Of a DNA stretch of 64,000 nucleotides, positions 3,114 through 48,660 are shown in pieces. The notes below the pieces were generated by a model. It was not told the DNA's origin. It ran no database searches and saw nothing but the letters and a program-made list of their open reading frames with translations. The stretch spans positions 1-64,000 of the forward strand of contig NW_026939923.1 in NCBI RefSeq assembly GCF_032062105.1. Reading direction: 5' to 3'. This DNA is from Saccostrea cucullata. Its lineage: Eukaryota. Both the position numbers and the translations under genes were made by a program. Every line of letters starts with the position of its first letter. The first letter of the stretch is position 1.

Positions 3114-4163
3114 CTTATTTTACCAGTTTTTTTTCACAATAGAATTTTGTAAAACAAGCCAATTTTTAACATAAGATTTCAAATTTTCTTCTGACATTCT
3201 TTCATTATTGAATCGACTCTTCATTTTATATTTATAGATTGTAAAACAAATAAATGAGATAAGATTATTCAAAATACATGTTTTCTCTGATAAATCACCA
3301 AAAAATGCCAACATAATACGTTTGCATGAAACGTTAAATTTTAAAAATATACTAATTTTCCTCCACAAATATGTTGTAATGGTACAAGAAAATAAAAGAT
3401 GTTCACTATCTTCTGATACATTGCATAACTCACACATTGGTGATAGATCTTTATTCCATTTACTTACGCTTATATTAGTATTTAACAGACAATTAATCAG
3501 TTTATAATTGAATTCTGCAATCTTTTTGTCATACATATTACAAATTTTTGAAATGTATATATTCTTCCATAATGATTAATCTTCTATGTTGAAATACTTA
3601 TTCCACTTATTCTCATATATTGAATTCTGAAATTTGGATTGAACTAAGTCCGAATAATAAAAATCACTTTTTAAAGATTTGATCGATTTAAAACAATTGT
3701 TTCTAAACGAAAACGAGTCATTATTATGAATGTTGATATAATTGGCATAGGAACAATCAAGCCTTGATTTAAAAGGTCTTAATATCTTTTTTTAGAATAA
3801 TATATTCACAGTAAATATTGTTTTTACATTTTAATTTATCCAAAAAGTAATCCATTGCATGTATTTCACCGTTTTCATCAAAAAGATCTTTTACATATGA
3901 TATACCACTCTTGATCCATTGTTCAAAACATAATGTTTTAGAATCATATCGTAATAAATTATTGTGCCAGATAAATTGGGATAAAAATTCTTCCTTCAGA
4001 ATTCTGTTGTTTTGTTTGTTTGTTTGTTTGTTTTTTTTTTTTTTTGCACTTATTAAACATTGAAAATACTTCCACATAAAACTGTGGGAAATTAGTCAAT
4101 TCCCAGAATTTTGTATCATTCAAATTGCAACTCGTTGTTTTAATGATATCATTTATAGATAAA
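3114..4163 (-). mobile_element. Tx1/L1-type LINE ORF2, C-terminal part (zf-RVT, CxxC..E..EH), frameshifted; continues at 15272 after two insertions
   Basis: ORFs 3120-3536 (CELCNVSEDSEHLLFSC), 3769-4077 and 3959-4186. The uninterrupted copies read ATAGATAAATTACTATTTTCC across this junction. Confidence 0.92.
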
Positions 4164-27135: not shown

Positions 27136-29975
27136 TGATAGGTTGGGATGTAAAGATTATTTAAGATACGATCTTTTTCAGGGGCGAAATTCACAAAAAA
27201 AAAAAAAAAAAAAAAAACGAACAAAAAATTAGGAAACCTAATTTTGATTATGTGATTAAATTTTATGCCAGACAATTTTATGGTCAGACTAGCTCAGTTA
27301 GTATATGTGCTGACTCTTACACTATCCATACTCTCTTTTTAATGTCGGTGGTTCGAATCCACCTGGTATGACAATTTTCAAGTTTTCATTTTTCGCATTT
27401 CAAAGACTATTTAATTTTTTTTTTATAGTCTTGTGCATTTTCTTTCAATTATCTATCCTTTATGCCTGCCCATTCATAATATAAGAAACACTAAAGACAG
27501 ATCAGATCGTATCATTCCAATATACAGTTGTTAGTCAGGCGGAACAATAATGCTTCTATGGCAAATGTCTGTATTTGGTCTCTGCCGAATTAGGCAAACG
27601 AGACTTCACATACATCAGCTGTTTGTGACTTGACATGTGTAAAATAAAAAAATAATATGTACGGCTACAAAGATTGTCATTGTAATGAACGATATTCGGA
27701 TAATTGTTCACTATGAAATTGATTGTTTTCTCCAGATGACAAAATCCTTAACCCTAAAAGTGCTGGAAGCAAGTTCCCTATCCGTGGATTTTACATAAAA
27801 TATAGCCGCCTTTTGATAAACTTCGTACAATAAAATTATTTAAATTATGTAAAATTGCAGAACAAAGGAACAGCGCACATACAGCTTGCTCCTAGCACTT
27901 TTCAAAATGCATGTAGTACGGACAACAGCTACATGTGTGTCTAAGAAAAATTACAATTTATAGTGAAACGGATATCGTTAAAGTTTTGATATCTTCGAAA
28001 GATTGTGTCCATATAAGGCCTATTCTTTTTCGATATAATAAGTTTAATATTTGTTTAATGCATTCAAAAATATGATTCATTTCAATAAGATAAAGCTTAT
28101 TGCCTGACGTCACGGCGTCACACTCTACTAAGGATTAATATTTCCGATGTTCGAAGCGAAGAGGTCACAGTTAGCCAGCAAAATTTTGTGCATGCTGATT
28201 ATCATCGGATTTTGTTACATTCGTTTCAGCAACAACAGTTAGCAGAAAACTAACCATATTGCTGATACAATAAATTGATGTATTTATTTTCTTTAGCTTT
28301 TTGATAGCAGCTATTTTTTCATGCACGTTCTGATAGGCCATGTCCGTTTGTCTTTTTTTCTGCGTTTCTATACAACTGGATTAGTCCATCTGTCTTCTAG
28401 GTAAGGGATGACTAAATCATTTCGCGCCAAAATGTCACGTGTAAGCTTTGCACCCTTTTCCTGGACTAGTCTATTGAATGGGAATGAAAACTGCATGAAT
28501 TATATAAAGTCTGTTCTTTTTTGTCGGAATCCTGGTAGAGCTTTGGAAAAAAAAAACATATCGGTGATATTATGAAGTGAGTTAGAAGTTACATCATTTA
28601 AAGTAATAAAAACGAAAGGAACAAATGGACAGGATATGTACTTGCCAAATATACATCTGATCATACCCACGCCCCCCCACCCCCCCACCCCCCCCCCCCT
28701 CTCAAGGGGTTATTCTCCACAGAGTAAAGACTTATGAAAGTGTCCTCTCACATTTTAAAATTGAGAAAGTTTATTCCTTTTTTGGTCGTACAAATGTTTT
28801 TGATGTGGACCCCTCATCCCTGGGAAAAACTTCCTGAATCCGCACCTGTCGCCATTCATATATCGCCGTCTTGTTTGTTGGGTCATTTGAGCATATAGGA
28901 CTTTAATTATTTATCCCACGTTTCCAACAATCGTTGATGCTCTGTCAAACCCAAGAAGGTATTAAACATATCCTGCATGTCAGTCATAACCGTTACGATT
29001 CCCAATTTCTGGTAAATATCATATTTTCAGCTGTCTTCCTCAAAGCCTATGCTGTTTATGCAGTTGAATCTAATTTATGTTACCTTTACATGTAGCCATG
29101 CTTTTCAGCATTAATCAATTACATTAGTATTTTCCCTCATTTACTTCGTACTAGCTCTAAAGCCATTTTTAGACTCGCAGGGTGAGTTGTTCATCTTTAC
29201 GTCGCGGGTTCGAATCTACAGCGGGACATGTACACGATTTTATTTTTATTTGAGATACAAACAATCAATACGTTTTATATAAAATGTCTTCTTTTTCCAT
29301 TCCTCTGATGAGTATCATACAACTTAAAATGAATGCATGATGTTTTGTGCAACACCTTCATAATTTACTCTTGTGAATTAATTTATCACCCTCCAACCTT
29401 ACCTCAATGTAAACGTTTATAACATATTATGCTTATAGGTTCTGTAGATATTGATGGCATTAGTCAGGCAAGCCTTTTAAAAAAGCTGTTACTTGTTTCA
29501 TTCAAAAGTTCATCAGTACAAGCTTCAATAATCAATTATAGCCTGATCTACGTGTCATGTACAGAGACACTTGGTGTGAAACTAGTCTGAGACCTCATCT
29601 CAGACAGTGCAACGAGACCAAGTTAGCTTTAATTCTACATTTAAAAAGTGTAGTAACAATAACAAGGTAAGTAACTGTACACCGTGGATTTTGTTGGCAA
29701 TATTTATGAGAAATTATTGCATGTACCGGTATAAGTGTATAAAAAAAATGTATTTTTTCGCCGCAAATCATTTGCACAGTACCATGGCGTCTTATCGCTT
29801 TCCCGAAGCTCTGCGAAGGCTGATGTACCAATGTGAGTCTTTAACCTAGCTTCCAGGTTAAGTCAAGGGTTTTATGGGTTTGACCTTAAAAATTTAGGTG
29901 CCATGTCACGGAAGGCACTGGCACAATAAAGAACCTTCACTGCTCAATGGCCCTAAGGGCGGAGTATAAGTCTAA
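27136..29975 (+). repeat. Array unit U4
   Basis: Colinear with U1 and U3; abuts U5 with no LINE spacer. Confidence 0.95.
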
Positions 29976-32900: not shown

Positions 32901-33119
32901 CCGCAAATCATTCGCACAGTACCATGGCGTCTAATCGCTTTCCCGAAGCTCTGCGAAGGCTGATGTACCTATGGGAGTCTTTAACCTAGCTTCCGGGTTA
33001 AGTCACGGTTTTTATGAGTATGACCTTAAAAATACAAGTCCCATGTCATGGATGGCACTAGCACAATAAAGAACCTTTACTGCTCAAGGGCCCTAGGGGC
33101 CGAGTATAGGTCAAAATTT
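29984..33119 (+). repeat. Array unit U5 (full-length, probable source copy continuous with the unique gene body)
   Basis: Only copy in which the terminal SINE runs on to its 3' tail and into unique sequence. Confidence 0.93.
32700..32802 (+). promoter_or_regulatory. Candidate promoter-proximal non-coding exon 1 of the GIMAP gene (5' boundary unknown)
   Basis: Consensus donor AAG|GTAAGT at 32802/32803, 607 nt upstream of a strong acceptor (TTCTTTTATTTTCCTTTAG, ending 33409). Confidence 0.45.
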
Positions 33120-33200: not shown

Positions 33201-33440
33201 ATTCAGTTTAATTGTCCTTATGAAATAGATTAGAAAACGACAACGGTCAAAACTGCAACGATATAAAATTGTACACATAAATTACAAATCTAAATAGAAA
33301 ACTGAAGCTTCATTCAAGACATATATACATTGTCTCAAAGTTTATAAAAAGTCTTTATCCGTAACCTTTGTTGTAACTGGCATTTAAATGTTCTTTTATT
33401 TTCCTTTAGACAGAACAAAAACAACCACGTGTAAAGAAGA

Positions 33441-33489
33441 ATGAAGAAAATTCTCCTTATGTGCATTTTTCTAACCGTATATGGTCATG
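33441..33489 (+). CDS. GIMAP: Putative first coding exon of the GIMAP gene: signal-peptide-like MKKILLMCIFLTVYGH(E)
   Basis: Acceptor at 33409, ATG at 33441, and donor G|GTAAGT at 33489/33490 in phase 1, matching the phase-1 acceptor at 44565/44566. Confidence 0.65.
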
Positions 33490-34339
33490 GTAAGTGCATT
33501 TTAAACAAATGTAACATTTCCCTCTTCCCACTACCCTGTAAAATGCATTGAGAAATAAATCCATGTCAAGTCTTAAGGCTATCTCCAGGCACACTGCTCT
33601 TGATATCACACATGCGAAAAGACATAAGCATATTTTCTTTCTCCGTTTTCAACGTTCTCGTTTTGTAATAAAAGATCAACCATAATCTACTGCAATGCGA
33701 AAAATGCATGTAATGGCTGTTTCGTACGAATGGGTGGAAGAGAACCCACCAGTTGCTCTGCTGGTTACATGTAAGCCTTGCTGTGACAACATTTACTGCA
33801 TTATTCAAATTTCCTCTCTTTCGGATATTATCCAAAAATCGGACGAGATCATAGATAGAGTATGATTTGTTTCTGTTACATGTCTTCCTTTTCAATTTTA
33901 GTTTTTTTTTGGGAAGAATGATGGGATATCTAGCATTTAAGATAAGAATATTGTATGTTTTAACCGTCCATCACATTTCAAAAGTCTGCCTTCATCGCAG
34001 GGATGGGGTCGATTACTTTCAAAAGTAATCGATTAAATTACAATTACTTTGGATTTTAAAAGTAATCGATTACAGGCTGATTACAGATATTTTTTAAAGT
34101 AATCAATTACATCTGATTACTTTTCCTTCATGTAATCATAATAACCTATGACTACTTTAGATTACATTAAGTTTTATGTTTTTATTTAATATTCAAGGAC
34201 AACGTCATGCTTTTATTCTTCCTATTTTAAATATCATTAATATTTTTAAGATAGATTTCAGACAAAGTTTGGTTGTATATGTCTTTATATAGAAGCATGA
34301 TATTTATCTTATAATACCTGAATTCCATCTTTAATACAT

Positions 34340-36849
34340 GAGCCTCGTCGGATAGAAATCGACCTTATCGTATGCAACGCCATAATGAGAAAAAAGGGAA
34401 TAAAGTTGAGAAAGATTTCCCGGTAATTTTACTACACATGGTTTTCACGTTAAGGAATGTTTTAGACATCGTCAACTGCAGTTCAAAGATTTTTTCTTCG
34501 AAAAATCTGATCATTTTAAACATGTACTAATAAAATAAACATATTTTAAATGTATTCCCCTTCGTAGAGCCTTATTTTTTTTTTTATTGTTACCATGGAT
34601 CAATGTAAAGACAAGCAAGAGGGATGCCGAGTCCGACCTACACTTTTTTTTTCAAACCGCAGAAGACGTAAGGCCATATCTAACACCAGATAAATAATAA
34701 GTTGGTAGACATATAGCGAAGAAAAAATGGCATTGTGCATTACTGAGGAAGTACGGAATATATTTTTTATTGTAGTTTAGAGTATAAATTTTAGCCAGAG
34801 GAGACGTAATCTGGTACAGAAAATCGCACATGTACTGATGCAGTAATAGCCTAGTGTTTGAACTTCATTTACTATTCATCGTGTGACGTATTCATTCATT
34901 CACGATTAAATTCGCAATATTATATTAGATATACTTAAATGTTTCATGTCTTTGAATGAATTTACGTGTATTTTCGAATTTATCACAGAAATTAACCAAC
35001 CAACCAAAACAAAACAAACAGAGCTCTAGGCATATCGATTCAGTGCAAAATGTACAAAGGCCACGATTCAACAACTTTTAAAATGCATTTTTCTAATTAC
35101 AATATCAAGAGATATCAAGAAACAATTAATACCGGTAAGGTAAGGCAATTTCTTCATATGTCAGTAATTCCCAAACGGAAACACGTATTGTCCGAAGCGA
35201 CTGGATACGATAAATTGTGCAAGTTGCTTCCCTTTGACACAAAAAAGAGGCTCAACACGGGGAATCATTTAATTAAAAAAAAAGATGTTTTTTTTTCTCT
35301 CTATCTTAACTTTTGTCTCTCTTCCATTACCAGATTTTAAGTTAATTTTCGTTAATATTTCACTCCTTATTTTGCAAGTTTATAAAAAATACCGACGATG
35401 GATTTTCTTTGATTTTTAAACTTCTTTAACTTGGCTGGCGAAAATGTAAGAAGATGGGCCCGATTTGTAAAACATATCCTTCTACGTCATTAATATTTAA
35501 AAGAGTTGTAAACCAAAATTTTACTCTACAGTCGGATGTAAAAAAAAATAGTTTTGTGAAAGGTGTTCTGAAATATTCAGCATAATGTTAAGTATTTTGA
35601 ACCCCGTTAATACCAAACTTTTTCCAAAAATCATATCTTGAGCAGCTGGATTTCACCTGTTCGTGAATAACAGGAATATGGTTTCGTTTTGTACTAAGAC
35701 TTTCACTTATAACATCAAAACGTTCTCTACATTATAAATTTCTTCTACAATTCTCTTTTTTTAAAAGAGAGGGTGGATACCCACAACAGATAACTTAATT
35801 ATTAATCTCATTTTTTTTTTATTGATTTATTTTATTTACAAAATCATAAAACAAACAATTATGAAATGTCTATAATTTTATAAGTGTTGTGTTGGACTGG
35901 GTTAGGAACGGGATAGCAGAATGTTGTCGATGCGTACGCCGCGTGCCTTCATACATATTATTTTTCTCTAAAGGAGAGTTATTTTTTTTTGGGGGGGGGG
36001 GGGGCTTCCTACCTAATAAAATGAGCTTACTTTTAGACACAGCGCTAGTATCACACCATGTTTGATTTCACGAAATCACTATGTATATACAGATGGATGT
36101 GATTTTTTAAATTTAAATTAAGAATAATTATTGTAGCATGATTTAAGTTGTGATTTTATTGGCTGCATGGTTCATGTATTTTCTGTAAGAAACTAGGTAT
36201 TTCTGCGATCGAATCCGAATCCCTGTAAATTTGGACTCGATCTCATTGGTTCCCTTTTCCTTTACATGGTGATTACGTAAAATCAAACATAGTGTGTTAA
36301 CTAACTTGCATGCTTTGAGGATGCAGGCTTTATCAAACGTAAAAGCAGCATGGTATAGATCTACATTTTGTTTATTGGAAGTTATTCATAGAGACAAAGC
36401 TGTCGGTACGAAAAAAAGACAGAAAAGTAGAAATTAAAGATCTTGGTGGGGGTGGGGGTGTACGTAGTGTATTCGCTTTTTAAAGGATTTAAAATACAGT
36501 TAACATAGTTTTTGGGATTGTACATCATGATCCTCTGTTTTTGTCATTTATTAAGCAATTCTTTTAACTTAGGCATGATGACCGCTTGGATTGCTACGCG
36601 TTGACAGGTGCCCTACCGAACAACTGAGAATAAACCATGACGTCACAATTGAATCGTGAAAAACCACGATATGCTCAGAGTTAATTTTGCAAACATACCA
36701 ATTTCAAAATGTAATAACTTTATTATAAATGAAGATATTTTGATTCCGTTTTCAGTTTTTGTAATGGTTTTACATGGACCATTAAAAAACACAAAAATCT
36801 AAAATTCGATAAATTTTGCCATAAGGTCGATTTCTATCCGACGAGGCTC
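34340..36849. mobile_element. Non-autonomous Sola2-like TIR element nested in the hAT element
   Basis: Perfect 29-bp TIR GAGCCTCGTCGGATAGAAATCGACCTTAT; 4-bp TSD ACAT; GAG terminus. Confidence 0.85.
36052..36296. mobile_element. MITE-like inverted-repeat element nested in the Sola2-like element
   Basis: CACACCATGTTTGATTTCACGAAATCACTATGTA is an imperfect inverted repeat of TACATGGTGATTACGTAAAATCAAACATAGTGTG; no clear TSD. Confidence 0.6.
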
Positions 36850-37838
36850 ACATGTAAATATCTCGTTACTATTGAGAGAATTAGAAAAAAGAATTTATTA
36901 AAGTTTTTTTTAATAAATCAAACTAAACATAATGATAGTAGGGATAAAGGGATTCGATAGGGAATTGTTACACAAGTAATTGACATTCCTGACGAGTGAT
37001 GGACTTTTCAATTAAACTGCCAATTATTACCTGGTGGATGTTTTTACTAGAATTAACACATTGACTGGACAAGCATGGATAGTTCAATAATTACTATTAC
37101 CCAAGCTGACCTAATTTTAGTATACCTGTGTTTTATGACTAATTAATTCACGTATCTTTTATGTACATTGTGAATCAAAAAAAGTGATTTTTAGAATACG
37201 CCTCAATAAAGGAACATTTGCTATAAAAAAGATTTTTTCAAAGACTTACAGGGAATACAAATTGTTGCATTACACGCATGTTCATTAATTGAAACAAAAA
37301 TAATTCAAACTTTAAAATGATCCTGTAGTAATTTTCTATCAGTTTATACATATATCTTGTCAAAAATAGCGAATTGCTAAGCTGCTAAAGTATTTTGAAC
37401 TGACTACTGAATATAGCAAGAAACTGATAGAATTTACTCATTGTCTGGACAATAGACCTGATTACAAGCATTTCTGGAGGCGTAAGAAGAAGATACTTTA
37501 TTAAATATAGCTTAATAACTTTTTTTAATAAAATATATTTACAAGGAAAAATATTCACTGAAAATCATCAAAAATAATGATTTTATGAACTTTGCTTTAA
37601 TAATTGTAATCATAAAGTAATCAAAAAGTAATCATGATTACAGGACTTTTTTCGGAGTAATTGATTAGATTACGATTACTTGTAATCAGAAAAATGGGTG
37701 ATTACTGATTACTCATGATTACTTGGCGAACTGTAATCGATTACAGCTGTTTACGATTACTGATTACGATTACCCCATCCCTGCTTCATCGATTACTGGT
37801 TTCAAACATTGCTGTTTTGTTGTAGAGGTTTGTTTTAA

Positions 37839-38935
37839 CGAGGCCCGATCTAGTTGAAAATTACGAAAACGGAATGATAAAAATTTTTAATTTTTGGAAA
37901 TATACTTGTGTGTTTTATGCTTAGAAAAATTAGAATGAAATTTTGTTACCTTGACTTTATTGTAGTGAAATGGGGGTATTGTCAATATATGGGCCATTTT
38001 TTCGTGTTTTTATACACAACTACATACTAAAACTCTTCAATAAACATAGAAATTTACAAATAAAAAAAAAAAATACATGGTGAAATTCTTTGTTTTTCAC
38101 ATATGTAATGCAAATTTCATTCTTCTTATACAAAATGAAAAGAAAATTGGTAGCCTTCATTGCAGTGAAAAGGGGGCATGTCAAAACACAAAATTTGGAT
38201 TTTTTCATCCAACTACGTATTTTATAGGTCGCTATAGGTTTACATAACACCAACAAACATTGCAATACTGTATTAGTTTCTAAAAATAAATAATTTTTAC
38301 ATTATGAAATAATTTTCTCGCGATGCTTAATTTTTCTCTCAACACGCAACATTGTTTTACGTGGAAAAAAAGGGTAGAGGGGGGAGAGGGATTAAAGGCG
38401 AGAAAAATTGCGATTTTTACTAATATCATGTTATATATAGAAAAATAAAATATTCAGGGGGTTCAATTTAACTGACTTATGGACTTATTTCATTTTTTAA
38501 AACTTCAGATAATCCATGCATATTTAAGTCCGTAATAAAAGGGGTGTGTATAAAGACTTCAACATGTTCAAAGAGAAAGACTAAAATCGTTTACTTTAAT
38601 TAGTTGCAGTGTTTTTTTTTTAAACTCACAAATTGAAATAAAACAAGATAAATTAATGAATCTGTACCAAAAAATTGATCCCTCAAAATTGATAAGGTTC
38701 CAAATTTGTTTATTTATTTAAATATTCAAAAAAAAAAAGAAGAAATGCCAGCTTTCAATGCATAGTCTGTAGAACTACCAGGTAAGCAAGATCAGCGAAA
38801 CATTTTAGCGCAATATGACGTCATTTTAATTGTGACGTTATTGTGTTTTATTGTTACGGCAGTCAAAGGTATTGTGACGTGCCTGAGACGACGCTGCGTA
38901 AAAACGTATGCGCAGATCAAGTAGATCGGGCCTCG
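37839..38935. mobile_element. Non-autonomous TIR element flanked by TTAA (or TA)
   Basis: TTAA-CGAGGCCCGATCTAGTTGA ... TCAAGTAGATCGGGCCTCG-TTAA; removal restores the BEL reading path. Confidence 0.85.
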
Positions 38936-40183
38936 TTAATTTAGTAATGTGTATTTACAATGAAATACTTATTTCTTGACAGTCCTTATGATTTGAGTTT
39001 CTACCTCTTCAATTTCTTCATCAATCAGTCCTCCTATGAGTCTTTTCATGAATTTTAGTCTGCATATAAGTAGAAAGCGATTCCTCTATGATTGATCTTG
39101 AACAAGTCGTATCCCAGGTTTCTGGGTTTAAACAATTCTGAATATCATTAGATCATCTGTTTCTGTGAGAACGAATATGAAAAAAAGACAACTTCTCTGT
39201 TCGACTTTCTTCTTTTCATTATCAGTGTCTTGCATTTCCACTTCATGTTTGGCAACTGTGATTCGTCCTAATAAAGACAGATATTATCCCCTTGTAATTT
39301 TGAAACAGACTATCTCCAGGACATCATATTTGCAAAATTGAAAGGACATAGGAAACGATTCCTAACGCCATACTTTTACTTTTTAAACCCAAAGCTACAT
39401 ATAAAAGAATGCTAAATTACGAGTAGTTATATTTTCTGACCTTTGTTCTGTTGTAAACAAAAGATAAAAAAGAATTCCAATTGTTACTTTTCTTACCCGC
39501 TTATCGTTCTTGATTTTGTGGTTTTATAAAGTTTAATTATATTTTATTTTTGAGAATATAAACGCGTGTCTGTGTTCAAATAAGTTATATGATTTCGTAG
39601 TTTCTTCATTTCAATTTGAACAAGTCGTTAATAAATAACGCCAACTGTAAACTTGGCTTGAAGATGACCCTGATGAATATTCTGTAACAATTACCCCTTC
39701 ATCTTCCAAATACTTACTCAATATAACTCAAAACTTCAGAAACAAATTAAGATGATTTTCTATATTAAATACAAAATCAAAAGGATTTTATCGTCTTTTG
39801 AAGAAAAAATATTAAATATCCTTTTTAAATCCAGGTAAATCGCGAAATGCAACAACAATAGAATGATGCATTAAGATTAACATATATCAACTTACAGTAG
39901 AAATTTGATTAGGCCTATAGAAATATAAAAGGAAATTTTAATAAGTGTGTAGGGAATATCCATCATATATACTCCAAAAATTAACACGGGGACCAGTGAT
40001 ATTGAAGTCCATGATAAGCGTGTACTACTTAAATATTCAGCATGTTTAAAGTTTCGTATTCTTTGGTCTGAAAGACACATATTGCTGCAATATCGATATA
40101 GCAGTAGAATCCCTGAGCATTTGACAAGAGATCATGATCGTATTCTCGTACAGAAAGATAATGCATTATTACAAATACTAATA

Positions 40184-40612
40184 AAACTAGAGGTACTGTG
40201 AGCAATGAGCTCACTAAATGATACCCCCGCCTCCCATAATGTCCATGTGTTGCTATATATTGTTTTATGGTAATGTGTGAAGAGGAATAACTCGTCCTAT
40301 CAAATGTTATCCAGAAGCTTCTATATGTACATCATGTAACGTTATAGGCTAACATATAATGGCAATGTCCATGTTTTGCTATTGAAACCTAAAATATGTG
40401 TCGGAAAAATGTAAAATAAGAGGTGCACAATGGCAATATGTAATAAAGATTCTGTGAAAGTTTCATTAAATTTCACTCTGTAGTATAAGAGGAGCTGCGG
40501 ATAAGAGAAAAAGCGTAGCAGACGACGGACGGATGGACGGGGCGGACGTAGAGACTGGCGGACGGAAATCCCTATTACTATATACCCTCCCACTTTTCAA
40601 GCGGGGGTATAA
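40184..40612 (-). mobile_element. Non-autonomous Helitron/Helentron (HINE-type) element
   Basis: AACTAGAG end with adjacent hairpin GTGAGCAATGAGCTCAC, subTIR ATACCCCCGC/GCGGGGGTAT and GACG/GGAC microsatellite. Confidence 0.75.
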
Positions 40613-42864
40613 AGAAATCAATTTTAAGTTCAGGCAAATAAGATTCTTACAATACAGTCACATTGATATGTACTGCTCTTTGATATAAGACTGTCAAAAT
40701 ACTAAATATACTGAAAGGAAAAAGAAATGCAGGGTAAACTTTTGAGGTGAATTAAATTTGTTTTTCTTTAATAACTTTTTAGTTTTTCTAACTAACTTTT
40801 AAAATCATCTCTCAAAGAGATATTACCAAATTCTCATATGATTTTGTGTAATTATTCATGAGTTATTGAAGCTCAAATGACGATACCCCCCAAAAGGGAA
40901 AATCGAAAACTCTCATTATCTTCAATGTCCATCTCGTGCATCTGTCAGAGTCTTATTTCTCCTTTGCATGGAATTTCATCAGAGTGTTTATCTTTCAAAC
41001 CCTGGCTATATTTAGCATGGGTAACCACGCAAAAAAATAAGAAACGGCGCGCGCATGCGCCAGTGAGAGGAATACAACAGTAAGTTGACTGGCTCAAAAA
41101 ACCAAATTGCGGAATTGTTTTCTTTCAAGTTTCGTATAAATGTAATGATTATAATCGTGTTCACTGTAAATTGGCTGTTTTTGTGGTAGTAAGGTGGCGA
41201 TTTAAGAGATGGCAGGACGAATAACCCGCTCGTAACATGGCTCTGATTCGCGTTAACGTCATCGTCACGGTTGATTGAAATCCACTCCAGACCCTCTCTG
41301 ACAACGGCTAAAAAGTTTTATGGGGGAAAATTTACAAGAGACTGCTTAGTAAACTGTTGTTGCCTTTTCAATTAATTAGGCAATTCGAAAACAAGACCCA
41401 TCGAACTTCCGTAAAGTGTGCCAAGATTGCAATAAATTCATAATGTCTCTTAATATTGAAAAACGATGTGCATACCTCATATACATCAAATAATGCAACA
41501 AGATTTGTGGACAAACACGTCGTTATCAAATTGCACATGTTTTGGTTTTTTTAGCGTTTTCCCTACGTGACGTCATAAATTTTACGGTTGAGTAATTCTG
41601 AATACTGATTTTGATGCGCAGTAACTAAATTTCCCATCTGACCAATTTTCGTAATTTTCGGTCATGTGGTCAAATTTTTATCGACAATTATGCTACCCTG
41701 CGTTTCTTTTTCCTTTCAGTATATAAGGTGTATGCCGGTGTATTTTATCGATTTCTTATCTATTCTTTAAATCCCTTTTTCATACATTTCACAGGTGTGT
41801 TTTTACTTACTGAAGCCATGATATATTTCTTGATTTTCTTTCTTTGTAGGCTACGATGTTTTGTTTTGTTTGAAACTGAGTCGTTTATACTTACCAGCGC
41901 ATACTATACACGTTTAAGATATTTAGTTCTTGTCCTAGTTGTTTTATAAAATCAAAAAAAAAATCATCTAAGAAAATGTTACGTTTCGAGAATTCCCTTT
42001 TACAAAAAGTATTGGAAATCGAAAATTAAGGGGAGGGGGCGCAGATTTTTAGACAGGAGATGGGGTAGAGTGTTGTACATGAACAAGTGAATATAAATAA
42101 ACGCTGTCAAATAACTAGAATTGATTTAATTGAATAAAACATTAACACAATAAAAATTTCATGTTTAACTTCACATTAAAAAAAACATAAAAGCTAAAGG
42201 CCTTATTTATCATATAGGTGGCTCATTCACTATGTCTTTATTGTCCAGAAAAAAATGAATCATTGACCACGTTGAACTCTTGGTGATAAAACAATACATG
42301 TTGTAAATAAATGCCCTATATAAAAAAGTGAATTAAATCCCACTCTCCCATCTTTCTCCATTTCGATTGCTTTATCCTTTCTCTCAATTGGTCAAAGTGT
42401 CAAATGATGCGAATAATTACTGACTGATAAAACATGCTAAAAATCTTGCAAATATGCGATGGAATTTATAAAAAAAGAAATACCAGCCTGTTTGACGATC
42501 GTATGATAATACAAGGTTTCAGTCATGATGATGATATTTCTTAAAATTAAGCTGCAAAATGACTTGACAGTTTGTAAACATTGCTAAGCCTTGAATAGCA
42601 ACTTGGCCTTTCTGACGTCATACCGGTATGTTAAGGGAGATTAGCGACGCATGTCAAAGCCTTTTTCCTGAAATGATTGACGAAAAAGTATCAACAGTCC
42701 CGCTCAAAGTTATCATGTTGTATGTTTTATGGTTGATGTAATGACATTGTCAGCAAATACAATTTATTTATGAGTCAAATGTTGACTGGCGTTTTCCATA
42801 CTATTTATTTGTCCATTATTTATACTTTGAACTGACGACTGATTTTCCGTTATTTTCCGATCAT

Positions 42865-43010
42865 GATAAGGGGTACCCGGCGGGTGTGACCGGTTGACAG
42901 GGGTTGCTCACTCCTCCATGGCACCTGATCCTTCCTCTGATGTTCTGGAACCCTGTGTTTGCTCTGCTCCTATTTTGTTTTGTTTATGGACTTTGAGATC
43001 GAATATTTGT
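42865..43010 (+). mobile_element. Fragment of an abundant molluscan retroelement 3' end (probably Penelope-like)
   Basis: GGCGGGTGTGACCGGTTGACAGGGGTTGCTCACTCCTCCATGGCACCTGATCC motif recognised from memory; classification uncertain. Confidence 0.45.
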
Positions 43011-43647
43011 TGGATTATTGATCTTTAATACTATTCATTATCTCCGTATATTTCATTTCTTCCATTTTTTTTATACTGAAAGCCTACTGTATTGAAAGCA
43101 GTTTTGTGGTAGTAAGTTATCGATTAAACAGGCGGCATGATAAATAACTATTCTTAACGTGGCTATGTTATGCGGCAAAGTCTTCGTCAGGGTTAGTTGA
43201 AAACCATTCCAAGCTTTCCCTGACGACAGATACGAAGTCTATGGGGGGGGATTCAAAAGATCTACTCAAGAATCCTCTGCTCTGTAGCCTTTGTCCTAAC
43301 TTAGGTATTTTAAAACCCAGAGATCTTTATCGTCTGTAAATAATGCAATACAATGTGTGTATATCAAATGCATCAAATTGTACAAGATGTGTTAGCAAAT
43401 ATTTTGTATTCAGTTTGTACGCGTTTTTGGCTTTTAAGCACTTTCTCTTCCTGACGTCAAACATTAAACAGTCGAGTAATCATGAACACTAATTTTAGTA
43501 CATAGTACGTAAGATTTTCATTAAAACAGTTTGCAAAATTTTCGGTCATGCTTTGATGCTTGCGCATTTTTTTTCCTTTTGGTATATTACAGAACTCGAT
43601 TTACAAAGGGAATAACTATAATGATAATGAATACTCAAAGCTCGTTA

Positions 43648-44009
43648 CATCGTCGCAAACCACGGCCAAAATGTACGCTCCTCTCCCATCTGGCCGTGGT
43701 TGAAAGAGGAGAGAATTCTTCGTAGGTCATTAAAATATTGACCTATGCGAGTAAAGCATAGTTTGATGATGAACTTTATCGCGACCTTTCAATATGCAAT
43801 CGCATTAGAGGAAATATTTCTTGTACACTGTTGACATCAGTTGTTGATTTTGATTGCGATCGAAACAAAACTTGCCACTGACTGAATATGACGTCACAAT
43901 AGAGAGACGTAAATATTCAAGATTACGACACTTTTTGTGATCAAGCAGCCACGGGTAGGAGCGAGCTACATGTATATATGCGGACTCCGGACCATGGCTT
44001 GAGACGATG
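43648..44009. mobile_element. MITE, 362 bp, 9-bp TSD
   Basis: CATCGTCGCAAACCACGG...CCATGGCTTGAGACGATG; perfect TSD AGCTCGTTA (43639-43647, 44010-44018). Confidence 0.85.
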
Positions 44010-44565
44010 AGCTCGTTAGTGCAGATCCTTCGTAGGAAAGAATAGTTATCTTAAAATATAATTGCATCGGTGTGTTTCTTCTAATGATGAGATATGATGC
44101 ATTTGTAATCAGGAAAATTCTCATCTCTTTACAACAAAATCAAGCTCAGAGATCGAACATTTTCATCATGCATTATCCCCGGAAGCAAATTGGAAAGGGG
44201 GGATTAAAAGAGAAAACAAATCAAAGATGGAAAAAAAATTAAGAAACTATAAAAAAGGAAAATTTTCCATTGTCTAAACCCGAAAACCCGTGTATGTTAG
44301 AAGTTGGGGCTAAACATACGCCCCAATCTTCCACACCTTTATAATATCTATCTTTGCAGAAAAAAAGGATAAGCCCCTCCCTCCCGTTCTGTCGCCTATG
44401 TCTTGAATGAGTATGAGTATGAATGGGTTTTTATACCGTTTATTTTCCCCTTTAAAACCTTAATAATTTCTATTTTTAGAAAATTAGAATTACATTTGTT
44501 CCTTTTGTGTCTATTATATAATAATGTTTACATTATTAACATTATCATTATTATTATAATTTCAG

Positions 44566-45383
44566 AGAAGATTATTCGACTTCTTCTTATCGGAAAAACT
44601 GGTGTAGGAAAAAGCACGACTGGGAATATCATCCTTGGAAGGAACGTATTTAAAACTGGAACATCTCCGAATTCAGTCACAAAAGTGTCCCAAGCAAACG
44701 AGACAAGTAATCATGAGAAACAAATAGTGACTGTTATTGACACACCTGGCTTTTTTGACACAACAAAAAAATTAACTGAAATCGAAGATGATATCACGCG
44801 GGCATTCATGCTTGGCTATCCAGGATTCCACGCTATTCTTTTTATAATTAAAATTGGTAGGATTATAGAGTTTGAAGAACAGTTTATTGATTTTTTTAAG
44901 CAAAGATATGGAGAAAGCATATTTAATTACATCATAATTGTTTTCACGGGAAAGGATGATCTTGACTCTGAAAAAAAGACCATTGATGCGTACGTTCATG
45001 AAATTGATAGTCATTCTAAACTAGCTGATTTTATTCAAAAAACAAGGGGTAGATATATTGCGATTGGTCGCCCAAATCCGTCAGCAGACCATAACTTCAA
45101 TGAAAAGCTTTTTGAAATGATTAATAATATGGTCGAGGAAAATAACAGAAAAGAAAGCCCAATTTACACCCACCAGTTATTCGAATTAAGCAGGAAGCTT
45201 AGCGATGAAGAAAAGCAGAAAACACAACTAGAAATGAAAAATGCTGATCTTACAATGAAAAATTCAGAATTAAAGAAACTTGAAAAGGACAAGCTAGAAG
45301 AAATGGTGAAAATACTCAATGAAATTGCAAGACAAAATTCAAATCGTTTCAAAATAAATTTGTACTTTCAATTTTCATTTTAG
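44566..45383 (+). CDS. GIMAP: GIMAP / AIG1-family GTPase (GTPase IMAP family member-like), main terminal coding exon
   Basis: G1 GKTGVGKS, G2 SVT, G3 DTPG, conserved box PGFHAILFIIKIGR, G4 TGKD, C-terminal coiled coil. Acceptor ATAATTTCAG at 44565; the N-terminal 54 aa of the ORF track are intronic. AATAAA at 45588. Confidence 0.93.
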
Positions 45384-46717
45384 AAAACCAATGTTATGTG
45401 TACTTTTAGTCCACTAACTGACTACTTTAAAACCTTTGAATCGATTTCATAAAAGGTAAGTTTGATCAAGAACAGCAAAAAAGATATTTCTGTCAGTATC
45501 AGAATTTAAACTTAATTTTTAAAACTAATCAATTTCTCCCTGTTCTGTTTGTCAATGAACAACGATTGAGTGGTTTCATTTTGGTAAAATAAAAAAAAAA
45601 TAATTAAAACATAATTACCGCACCGAAAGCAAGTTATCAATTTTATTGTTAACATTGTTTAGATATAGTCCTAACTCCTTAGAAAGCTGTCTGATGTGGG
45701 AAATTTAAATTCTGGCACTCGTTATTCACTCATTGCTAATGTTTATAAAATACAAGTAGGTAGCATATACCATATTTGACACATGGCTCTCAAAAGCTTA
45801 GGAACAAAAATAAGGTACATTCTCCATACAATTTTTTCTCTCTTAAATATTTTGGATGGTTTTACCATATTTTAGCCGGATGAATATGTACCCCCTTCCG
45901 GCATACCAGTCATGTTCATGCATACATATAGATGTCTGATGATAATTCGTTATATCGCTATTATCTCGCAGTTACATGATTCTAATTTACTAGCGCTCTT
46001 TTGCAAGTGAGTCTAAAAAGCGATAAATCTCGCAAGGTTTCTGGGGCACATGACTTGTTTACCGTAGTGGCAATCGAATGATTCAACGATTTTATTTGAA
46101 AGTACAATTTATTTCCAAGTATTGAACTCCAAATTGTAGATTTTCAAATAAGGAAAGTTTTGAATATTTTATCAGTTTTGAAAGGTGATAACTTAAATGA
46201 AAAATATGAAAAGAATCTGCTTAGTTAAAAATATTGTTAAATATGTAACATTTTAGGATAAGCTCCTCTCCATAATTGATTAGTTCAGCGATTGTTTAGC
46301 AAGGTAATCCACTGGGATTTTTAGGTCACTTGAGTAAACTCAGGTGACCTGTTGCTACCTCTTTTTGTCCGTCGTCGTACGTCGTACGTCGTACGTTGGT
46401 CGTAAACATATGAACATTCTTCTCTTGAACCACTAAACCAATATCAACAAAATTTGGTTTAAAGCATCTTTGGATAAAGGGGAACAAATTTTGTGAATTT
46501 CATGGTCCCTGCCCCCGTGGGGCCTGAGGGGTGGGGCCAAAACCAATAAAAATTAATGCAATCTTTAAAAAATCTTCTTCTTTACTCCTGGACATCAAGC
46601 AGTCATATTGTTTGCATGTTTGTAATCAGCATTAAGTCCTCTATCAACATTGTGAAATTCATGGCCCTGGGGTCAGGGGCTCTAGTGCTAGGGCGAGGCT
46701 AAATAGATTATATAATG

Positions 46718-47304: not shown

Positions 47305-48660
47305 CAGTACCTGGCCATAAGTCTGTCATAAAATGGCTGACGTAACGTAACGTGAACAACGTGAACGCAAAATTCAAAAATAAAAAAAATTCTATAAATA
47401 TTAAGCACTTACCTTTTTATCTCTAGTATTTAGTTGCATGACCCTTAGATTTAATAACTTGTCGAATTCGCCTTGGAATTGAAGCATACAGACTCTGAAT
47501 GTAGTGCTGAGGCAAGGACCACCATATTTCCTTTACTTTCAAGATGAGGTCTTCACGATTATGAATATTGTAAACCTGTCTCTGAAGACGTATTGTTATG
47601 GTTTTCCACACATTTTCAATTACATTGATATCTGGAGAATGTGATTGCCAAGTAATACATTTAATTTCGTTTTCAGTTTTCCGTGATTTTGTGGCGTTAG
47701 AGGAGTAAACCGGTGCATTATCATCTTGAAATAAATAGTCACCATTCGGGAAATGGCGCAAAATAACTGGCCATAAATTTGTATCCAAAATGTTAATGCA
47801 TTTTTGGGAATTAATATTCCCATCTACCTCTGTAAATGTTCCGATTCCTTCGTGAGTAATACACCCCCAAAACATCGCCGAGTACTTTCCGTTTCCACGG
47901 ACGCCAAGACACTCTGGTCGCCATACTTCGTCGGGTCTTCTCCAGATGTAAACGCGCTTATTCTGGTCAATCACAACCTGGGTTTCGTCGCTGAAAATCA
48001 CCTTTTTCCAATTATTATTCACTGTCCAATGTAATTTCCCTCGACACCAATTTACACGGCGGGTGCGGTTTACAGATCGAATTGTAAGGGTCTTCCTGGT
48101 TTTCCTTCTTGTAAAGTTTAAAAATCGCAACCGTCTTCTTACCGTCCGTGAAGAGATAGAACTTGGTAACTTCGAGTTCACTTCATCAGTTATTTCACCC
48201 AAAGTTTGCCGTCTGTTGAGTTTCACACATCGAAGTATCTTACGATCTCCTCGTACATCAGTTTTTCTAGGTCGACCGCTTCGATGCCTATTTTCGCTGG
48301 ATCCGCGCGTCTTGTATCGCTTGAGAAACTTGGAAATCCCAGACTGGCTCACAGAAAGAATAGCTGCTATGTCCTGTTGGGTGTATCCACTCTCAGACAT
48401 AGTTATTATCGCATTTTTCATAGGGGTAGACATTTGTTTACCTTTAGTAGCCATCTTGTCAGTTGCTAAATATTTGACAGATATTGCGTCACTTTTATAA
48501 AATGACGTCATAGAATTATTGTATACACTCTATAGAAAGGAACTATTCAACAGCAGCTTGCATAGAGCGATTTATTTACCAGCGCTAAAGAAAAAAAATG
48601 GCTTCCTGAATTTTGATATTTCAACAGCCATTTTTATGACAGACTTATGGCCAGGTACTG
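47305..48660 (-). mobile_element. Full-length Tc1 element, 1356 bp
   Basis: TIR CAGTACCTGGCCATAAGTCTGTCATAAAA at both ends; TA TSD (47303-47304, 48661-48662). Confidence 0.96.
47423..48454 (-). CDS. Tc1 DD34E transposase (343 aa from MATKGKQ; an upstream in-frame start at 48511 is possible)
   Basis: Paired-like HTH, GRPRK, FSDE, QDDNAP, SPDINVIE with 34 residues between the second D and E, and terminal GHATKY. Confidence 0.95.
   Translation of the reverse strand: MATKGKQMSTPMKNAIITMSESGYTQQDIAAILSVSQSGISKFLKRYKTRGSSENRHRSGRPRKTDVRGDRKILRCVKLNRRQTLGEITDEVNSKLPSSISSRTVRRRLRFLNFTRRKTRKTLTIRSVNRTRRVNWCRGKLHWTVNNNWKKVIFSDETQVVIDQNKRVYIWRRPDEVWRPECLGVRGNGKYSAMFWGCITHEGIGTFTEVDGNINSQKCINILDTNLWPVILRHFPNGDYLFQDDNAPVYSSNATKSRKTENEIKCITWQSHSPDINVIENVWKTITIRLQRQVYNIHNREDLILKVKEIWWSLPQHYIQSLYASIPRRIRQVIKSKGHATKY

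Follow-up and report, generated by a model that had tools for sequence, protein, structure and literature searches.

Among the vertebrate members of the GIMAP/AIG1 GTPase family, GIMAP4 and GIMAP7 are soluble cytosolic proteins, and GIMAP1 and GIMAP5 possess a C-terminal anchor. The GIMAP review among the literature that we searched treats these proteins as regulators of immunity and cell survival, covers cytosolic and C-terminally anchored forms only, and does not mention signal peptides (PMC8201404). Signal peptides are likewise not mentioned in a survey of the cnidarian proteins (PMC8857920). In Biomphalaria glabrata, SignalP was applied to all AIG proteins and identified no signal peptide in any of them; transmembrane segments exist in some. 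Within the literature searched, this is the only systematic survey of the family in a mollusc. That study, which defines a GIMAP by the pairing of an AIG1 domain with a coiled coil, treats bivalves only in its AIG1-domain trees (Lu et al. 2020, PMC7053062). Here, we analyze a GIMAP gene of the oyster Saccostrea cucullata whose predicted product begins with a short, signal-peptide-like leader. The gene resides in a stretch of 64,000 nucleotides (nt), called the window, comprising positions 1 to 64,000 of the forward strand of contig NW_026939923.1 (NCBI RefSeq assembly GCF_032062105.1). In this gene, the target gene, a GTPase exon is very probably spliced to a distant mini-exon, exon A, that encodes the leader.

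The finding is better stated in terms of a group of proteins than of a single gene: the target is one minimal member of a leader-bearing, cysteine-poor, A-I-G-type bivalve GIMAP subfamily, the designation A-I-G referring to its variant G5 motif. The literature that we searched contains nothing on signal-peptide GIMAPs, on the localization of oyster GIMAPs, or on GIMAPs in secretomes or proteomes. As far as that search extends, the leaders of bivalve GIMAPs are present in public gene models and are undescribed.

Probable joining of exon A to the GTPase exon

The GTPase exon opens after tttcag at 44566, and its frame contains no ATG from the preceding stop, at about 44400, as far as the P-loop. 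Exon A follows the acceptor ttcctttag/ACAGAA at 33410 (slashes mark exon boundaries), contains an in-frame TAA at 33432 and an ATG at 33441, and terminates after 33489 in the phase-1 donor GTCATG/gtaagt. The codon split across the two exons, G/AG, specifies Glu. A first-pass annotation, made from the DNA letters alone, had placed exon A, its ATG, its phase-1 donor, and the 44566 acceptor at these positions, had pointed out that the GTPase exon lacks a start codon, and had proposed the join; all of these elements are where it put them. Because exon A is preceded by an acceptor, it is predicted to be an internal exon, with at least one non-coding exon further upstream.

Three lines of evidence uphold the join: an NCBI model has the same junction, RNA shows that the acceptor is used, and the layout of exons and phases matches that of paralogs. 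The NCBI model of the target gene, P0001 (“GTPase IMAP family member 4-like”, Saccostrea cucullata, 266 aa, 100% identical), starts with the 16 residues encoded by exon A (its residues 1-16), continues with Glu, and then enters the GTPase exon. In what follows, the joined product is represented by this identical database protein, and the exons are otherwise treated separately.

Exon A also stands out among the possible upstream exons. On the plus strand upstream of the GTPase exon, which covers 44.5 kb within the window, we enumerated 846 candidates in which a frame opened by an ATG runs to a phase-1 GT. Of these, exon A alone has both a donor that matches the consensus at 8 or more of 9 positions and a last base that creates no stop. 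The remaining strong phase-1 donors, rejected as other upstream coding exons, sit in a repeated unit described below and end in T, which produces TAG with the AG of the acceptor. A repeat or transposon origin of exon A is ruled out by its match to one place only in the 1.17-Gb genome.

RNA contigs from two studies bear on the acceptor. Specifically, in contig 14 of metatranscriptome run X2 (plus strand, 396 nt), positions 51-396 match 44565-44910, and the 50 nt ahead of them do not resemble the genome upstream of 44565. The match of contig 7 of run X1 (939 nt, depth 10) covers 44565-45375 and likewise breaks off at 44565; by the usual convention for minus-strand records, the 109 unmatched nt of this contig are probably on the upstream side. 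Because contigs of two studies stop matching the genome at 44565/44566, the acceptor at 44566 is used in RNA. Both matches reach 44565, not 44566, as expected for an upstream exon that ends in G, which exon A does. The 109 nt of the X1 contig, if upstream, exceed the length of exon A, and thus fit exon A as an internal exon. Among the matches listed, no second piece of the X1 or the X2 contig falls in 39700-44565, and no splice partner lies there. We infer that exon A is what precedes the GTPase exon in these transcripts.

The third line of evidence is provided by paralogs whose models were mapped to the genome. P0028, P0031, and P0016 each have a leader exon with a phase-1 donor, and in each the GTPase exon is entered in phase 1 a few codons before strand beta1. 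P0028 and P0031 possess an extra 36-nt phase 1-1 mini-exon between the leader and GTPase exons, with the phase-1 split in a Glu codon; in P0016, the split codon is Gly. The paralog intron at the same place spans up to 7.7 kb.

An artefact of annotation would look different: the 44566 acceptor would be spliced to another upstream exon, and exon A would belong elsewhere or to nothing. This explanation draws on the fact that the RNA contigs reveal acceptor use and leave the upstream partner to deduction, and on the absence of any transcript-derived protein fragment of the target gene from the protein collection, which was queried with a 114-aa piece. In addition, the NCBI model may be ab initio at its 5′ end, and the 3′ intron of the model conflicts with what the X1 contig shows. 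However, exon A is the only strong valid candidate upstream, the transcript base that precedes AGAAG is G, the interval 39700-44565 holds no partner, the architecture and the split Glu codon recur in the paralogs, and a peptide as signal-like as the leader occurs by chance in only 0.3% of cases (see below). We judge an artefact quite improbable, and we hold with considerable confidence that exon A is spliced to the GTPase exon.

The 3′ end of the gene may exist in more than one version. The first-pass annotation had predicted a 288-aa product, and the read-through form does add up to that length exon by exon (16 + 1 + 271 = 288 aa). The read-through C-terminus (stop 45381-45383) exists in RNA as at least one isoform: the X1 contig is unspliced through the 45306 donor to 45375, and depth continues downstream. 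P0001, in contrast, ends in S-T-N following removal of the intron 45306-45409, and this NCBI 3′ form may be an alternative isoform. Compared with the reference, the coding exon in the X1 contig shows 27 substitutions and a net gain of 9 nt, a multiple of three, which suggests high allelic divergence with the frame preserved.

RNA depth within the 11-kb intron has a different source. Depth is strong on both strands at the repeats at 40100-41900, 42700-43100, and 43500-44100 in all four runs, and zero on 44100-44500. About 88% of the raw reads of the two oligo-dT runs (X14 and X15) that lie on intronic repeats continue into unlike sequence. The intronic depth comes from repeat families expressed elsewhere in the genome, not from exons of the target gene.

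The leader as a putative signal peptide

We judged the leader by classical criteria and against a chance baseline. Its n-region is M-K-K, its h-region comprises about 10 uncharged, strongly hydrophobic residues, and V-Y-G precedes His16, with small residues at -3 and -1. The basic n-region, the hydrophobic core, and the V-x-G pattern ahead of beta1 that were reported earlier are thus confirmed in the sequence. Among the 1061 ATG-started open 16-mers on both strands of the window, 3 (0.3%) are equally signal-like; hydrophobicity alone is matched by 14 of 1061. With 3 qualifying peptides in 1061, signal-likeness as a by-product of AT-rich DNA is ruled out.

Other properties of the leader concern its likely mode of membrane interaction. 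Hydrophobicity averages 0.7-0.85 while the hydrophobic moment is 0.10-0.22, and the leader is therefore uniformly hydrophobic; an Arf-like amphipathic helix is ruled out by these moments. The charge is +3 on the N-terminal flank versus 0 on the C-terminal flank, which favors an N-in/C-out orientation. AlphaFold2, applied to P0001 with 49 homologs, yields a confident G domain (mean predicted local distance difference test score, pLDDT, 86.6) in which beta1 comprises residues 19-26, and a separate low-confidence helix at residues 2-13 (pLDDT 55-65) that is detached from the G domain. Seven residues lie between the h-region and beta1 in the target. The target has a single N-E-T sequon; among relatives, that column also reads D-E-T, S-E-T, and N-E-A, and the sequon is absent in the mussel leader-type proteins.

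The first-pass annotation had proposed a secreted or lumenal immune GTPase. The signal-peptide part of that proposal is favored by the three regions of the leader, the -3/-1 rule, the moment, the charge, and the AlphaFold2 helix. The function of the leader, its cleavage, the final location of the product, and any immune role are what we infer from these features.

The GTPase domain

The target belongs to the AIG1/GIMAP GTPases by its domain match, its motifs, and its similarity to solved GIMAP structures. It scores 157.2 bits with Pfam AIG1 (PF04548), whose gathering threshold is 27 (E 4.6e-46), over profile positions 2-204 of 212. G1, G3, G4, and the conserved box (PG.HA) are all present in 44592-44957, and the target keeps all 16 invariant columns of a 50-sequence alignment, A1, plus the G1-G4 motifs. 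The closest solved structure is that of human GIMAP4 (3lxx, E 3.4e-32), and GIMAP7, GIMAP5, GIMAP2, and GIMAP1 are matched at E 1e-21 or better. In the AlphaFold2 model, the single long C-terminal helix at residues 219-265, which is rich in K and E and is a candidate for a coiled-coil segment, has block-mean pLDDT values of 74-93. The mature part contains no cysteine and no cysteine spacer, and there is no hydrophobic tail (C-tail hydrophobicity -0.87).

The G5 region had been singled out earlier as atypical. The motif RYIAIG is real, but it is not specific to this gene: the closest oyster paralogs have GRY[TM]AIG, and the variant is a trait of the subfamily.

Table 1. Positions of the exons, introns, and motifs of the target gene within the window.
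Feature	Position	Strand	Description
Mini-exon A	33410..33489	+	80 nt: 31 nt of 5′ untranslated region, then codons 1-16 and the initial base of codon 17
Putative signal peptide, residues 1-15	33441..33485	+	M-K-K as n-region, an h-region about 10 residues long, and a c-region with V-Y-G at its end
Phase-1 intron, 11,076 nt	33490..44565	+	GT..AG ends; carries repeat/transposon-derived sequence
GTPase exon	44566..45383	+	AIG1 G domain and long C-terminal helix; TAG 45381-45383 in the read-through isoform
G1 / P-loop GKTGVGKS	44592..44615	+	Invariant in alignment A1 (50 sequences)
G3 DTPG	44739..44750	+	From sequence and alignment A1
G4 TGKD	44946..44957	+	From sequence and comparison with GIMAP structures
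G5 region RYIAIGRPN	45051..45077	+	A-I-G in place of the usual A-[FL]-[NS]-N; aligns with ALNN of GIMAP4 and AFSN of GIMAP7
Optional intron, 104 nt	45306..45409	+	Donor GAAATG/gtgaaa, acceptor ttttag/TCC; removed in P0001, retained in the X1 contig
Alternative last coding piece, S-T-N-stop	45410..45421	+	NCBI isoform P0001

A leader-type subfamily of bivalve GIMAPs

Homologs of the target do carry leaders. Our leader heuristic identifies a signal-like leader in 36 of 119 homologs. Among the best 120 database relatives, most of the full-length oyster and mussel models (Crassostrea gigas, C. virginica, Saccostrea, Ostrea, and Mytilus) start with one. Many proteins called on short Logan contigs also possess the leader; in these contigs the leader runs without interruption into the spacer and the G domain, and they must therefore represent spliced RNA. 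We refer to the leader-bearing proteins as the leader-type bivalve GIMAP subfamily, a provisional grouping made in this analysis. Judged by the gene models, the leader appears to be widespread in bivalves and not special to the target gene.

The leader-type relatives share an order of elements: the leader comes first, an acidic spacer follows, and the spacer gives way to E-[VI]-R-[IM]-L-L-I-G-K-T-G. In 17 of the 32 bivalve leader-bearing proteins, spliced transcript contigs included, there are exactly two cysteines, both in the spacer and none elsewhere; vertebrate G domains in the same match list have 2-7. The N-terminal flank is more positive than the spacer or C-terminal flank in most leader-bearing bivalve proteins. 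A cysteine pair in the spacer together with a cysteine-free G domain would fit the pattern expected of proteins that fold in an oxidizing compartment. The layout predicted for the subfamily consists of a leader exon, a 36-nt cysteine mini-exon, the GTPase exon, and a hydrophobic C-terminal tail.

Paralogs within the S. cucullata genome divide by the form of G5. Those of the A-I-G type (L003-L010, L021, L022, and L026) share this form with the target, contain 0-3 cysteines, and lack a Met in frame anywhere from the preceding stop to beta1, except for L003, which has one 15 codons upstream. More distant paralogs with the classical x-F-N-N mostly contain 4-6 cysteines, and several start at an in-exon ATG 6-14 codons before beta1 and are therefore leaderless. 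The A-I-G form of G5 is, from this distribution, a marker of the leader-type subfamily.

The tails of the leader-type proteins deserve separate mention. Leader-type paralogs (P0008, P0015, P0016, and others such as L003, L005, and L008) end in a hydrophobic stretch that follows a conserved N-N-N-Q. An N-terminal signal combined with a terminal hydrophobic tail would also match the layout of glycosylphosphatidylinositol (GPI)-anchor precursors.

Two further observations concern the relatives as a whole. The teleost models P0088, P0098, P0107, and P0110 have a signal-like leader followed by a cysteine-containing spacer, and three of the four group together as a clade in the tree. Many entries that appear leaderless (P0009-P0011, P0019, P0033, P0035, and similar ones) begin with ...I-N-I-S ahead of D or E. 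This string is the translated 3′ end of an intron (attaatatttcag). Because these N-termini translate the end of an intron, they are artefacts of open reading frame (ORF) calling on unspliced contigs; such entries should not be taken for isoforms that lack a leader.

A maximum-likelihood tree built from 117 G domains places the target within the bivalve clade (Shimodaira–Hasegawa approximate likelihood-ratio test support 91). Its terminal branch is very long, at 1.24 changes per site, and the tree does not resolve its placement relative to the mussel and oyster leader-type groups. The best non-self identity is about 40-43%, and the database contains no close orthologue of the target, even in another Saccostrea. 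The target shares with the subfamily the leader exon, the phase-1 intron just before beta1, the A-I-G form of G5, and the cysteine-poor G domain. It is without the acidic cysteine-pair spacer and the hydrophobic C-terminal tail. The target reads as a reduced, fast-evolving yet constrained derivative of the leader-type subfamily, not as a typical member.

Proposed secretory targeting and its alternatives

The pathway that we propose would begin with the splicing of one or more upstream non-coding exons to exon A, and of exon A across the 11-kb phase-1 intron to the GTPase exon. The leader of about 15 residues would then take the ribosome-nascent chain to the endoplasmic reticulum (ER) co-translationally and would be cut after Gly15 (Gly15/His16). 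Cleavage would release a protein of about 31 kDa, consisting of a cysteine-free AIG1 G domain and the long C-terminal helix, with no membrane anchor, that would remain in solution, either in the lumen of secretory or endolysosomal compartments or in the extracellular space. We lean toward this reading, namely, targeting to the ER by the exon-A leader, cleavage, and release to the lumen or exterior. A wider proposal, which we put forward only tentatively, is that an entire clade of bivalve GIMAPs, possibly with independent teleost counterparts, is translocated into the secretory pathway. The GTPase would be lumenal or extracellular, with a disulfide-bonded spacer and a C-terminal transmembrane or GPI-type anchor, and the target would be a soluble secreted derivative.

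Several observations weigh against secretory targeting. The GTP-binding motifs are all conserved, which argues for nucleotide use, yet the ER and Golgi lumen and the cell exterior are not known to have a GTP supply. The length of the leader is toward the low end of the eukaryotic range, and only 3 residues would be left before beta1. The hydrophobic C-terminal tails of paralogs resemble the tail anchors of the cytosolic-facing GIMAP1 and GIMAP5. The contrast in cysteine content between A-I-G and x-F-N-N paralogs has a Mann-Whitney p of 0.003, but the paralogs represent few clades and are not independent samples. The deep oligo-dT RNA runs X14 and X15, examined as raw reads, provide essentially zero depth on the gene and no junction reads; because of this near-absence of reads, expression of the target gene is low or conditional. 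Finally, the long terminal branch possibly reflects relaxed constraint.

The first of these points keeps one alternative alive. If the hydrophobic N-terminus were not cleaved, it could serve as an anchor in the membrane of an organelle, acting as a signal-anchor or by post-translational insertion, and the G domain could be cytosolic, as in SR-beta or, loosely, in Arf and Sar1. Because the GTP site is fully conserved while a lumenal GTP supply is not established, such an arrangement has to be considered. It would also accommodate a leader that abuts beta1 directly, G motifs that are all intact, the tails of the paralogs with their likeness to tail-anchored GIMAPs, and the snail AIGs, some of which have transmembrane segments and none of which has a signal peptide (Lu et al. 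2020, PMC7053062). However, an h-region of only about 10-12 residues is too short to span a bilayer, the basic residues on the N-terminal side favor N-in/C-out, and the very low hydrophobic moment speaks against an Arf-like amphipathic helix. Moreover, the cysteine-pair spacer and cysteine-free G domains of the relatives fit an oxidizing compartment better. We consider an N-terminal anchor unlikely.

A second alternative would make the gene a lineage-specific duplicate that is drifting and almost silent, and whose leader and product no longer have a selected function. The long branch, the lack of a close orthologue, and the modest identity of the best non-self match agree with drift, as do the loss of spacer and tail and the near-zero depth in two deep RNA runs. 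The location of the gene agrees with it as well: in a genome with at least 127 AIG1 exons, a genome search reveals the target GTPase exon to be the sole AIG1 exon on its contig, isolated from the GIMAP clusters. Drift does not, however, readily account for a 288-codon frame that stays open in DNA of 32% GC, for the retention of all 16 family-invariant residues plus G1-G4, or for the changes in the X1 individual, which keep the frame. Spliced RNA in at least two studies and a confident AlphaFold2 model count against it too. We regard drift without function as very improbable. In the reading that we favor, the target gene is a highly diverged, isolated, and weakly expressed offshoot of the leader-type bivalve GIMAP subfamily.

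If a large bivalve subfamily, with the target as its simplest form, does enter the secretory pathway, a GTP-binding immune protein is placed where GTP is not known to be available. The role of the G domain there would need to be rethought, with nucleotide-independent scaffolding, use of GDP from nucleotide-sugar consumption, and action in a pathogen-containing compartment as options. If, instead, the leader merely tethers the protein to a membrane, a new mode of anchoring exists within a known family. The target protein is small, cysteine-free, and anchor-less, and secretion, cleavage, and nucleotide binding should be easy to test with it.

Genomic setting

The window, the first 64 kb of its contig, has a GC content of 32% and contains no N. 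An intact transposase ORF of the Tc1/mariner type (362 aa) lies on the minus strand at 47423-48511, 2 kb downstream of the GTPase gene, with Pfam matches to HTH_Tnp_Tc3_2 (E 3.4e-12) and DDE_3 (E 3.1e-9).

Upstream of the gene, a unit of about 3.1-4.6 kb occurs in five copies within 339-33011 (97-100% identity), with starts near 339, 18024, 22616, 27205, and 30338. The fifth copy ends directly upstream of exon A. Copies 1-4 possess a conserved strong donor, CCAAT/GTGAGT, after 2967, 20655, 25245, and 29832; the fifth, proximal copy has GG in place of the donor GT, near 32972. If this donor belonged to a non-coding first exon of the target gene, the nearest copy could not be spliced. Interleaved with the five-copy unit are repeated fragments of a non-long-terminal-repeat (non-LTR) retrotransposon on the minus strand (3120-4077, 15237-17620, 20729-21058, and 25392-27275). 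Among them are an ORF of the endonuclease/exonuclease/phosphatase type at 17192-17620 (E 2.5e-7) and tail ORFs that recur almost unchanged at three sites.

Comparison with known systems

SR-beta possesses a full-length N-terminal transmembrane segment, and Arf and Sar1 possess an N-terminal amphipathic helix. The target resembles these proteins, by analogy only, in having a hydrophobic element directly before beta1 of a P-loop G domain. It differs in that its leader is short and uniformly hydrophobic, with a low moment, and there is no sequence relationship.

Similarity to the vertebrate GIMAPs (3lxx, 3zjc, 6z3e, and 3v70) resides, judged by sequence, in the fold and motifs: E values range from 3e-32 to 1.5e-21, and G1-G4, the conserved box, and the C-terminal helical extension are held in common. 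The vertebrate proteins differ in lacking an N-terminal leader, in having A-[FL]-[NS]-N at G5, and in containing 2-7 cysteines in the G domain. The AIG/GIMAP family of B. glabrata is likewise a molluscan AIG1 expansion, many members of which have coiled coils and some of which have transmembrane segments; the snail proteins are without signal peptides, unlike the leader-bearing bivalve subfamily described here (PMC7053062).

The closest counterparts of the target are the oyster and mussel leader models, namely, P0028, P0031, P0016, C. virginica P0013, O. edulis P0008, and Mytilus P0049 and P0055. Like the target, these have a cysteine-poor AIG1 G domain, a signal-like leader on its own exon, and a long phase-1 intron a few codons before beta1, and the oyster ones have A-I-G at G5. 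They differ from the target, with which they are 37-43% identical, in possessing a two-cysteine acidic spacer, part of which the 36-nt phase 1-1 mini-exon encodes, and, in the usual case, a hydrophobic tail at the C-terminus.

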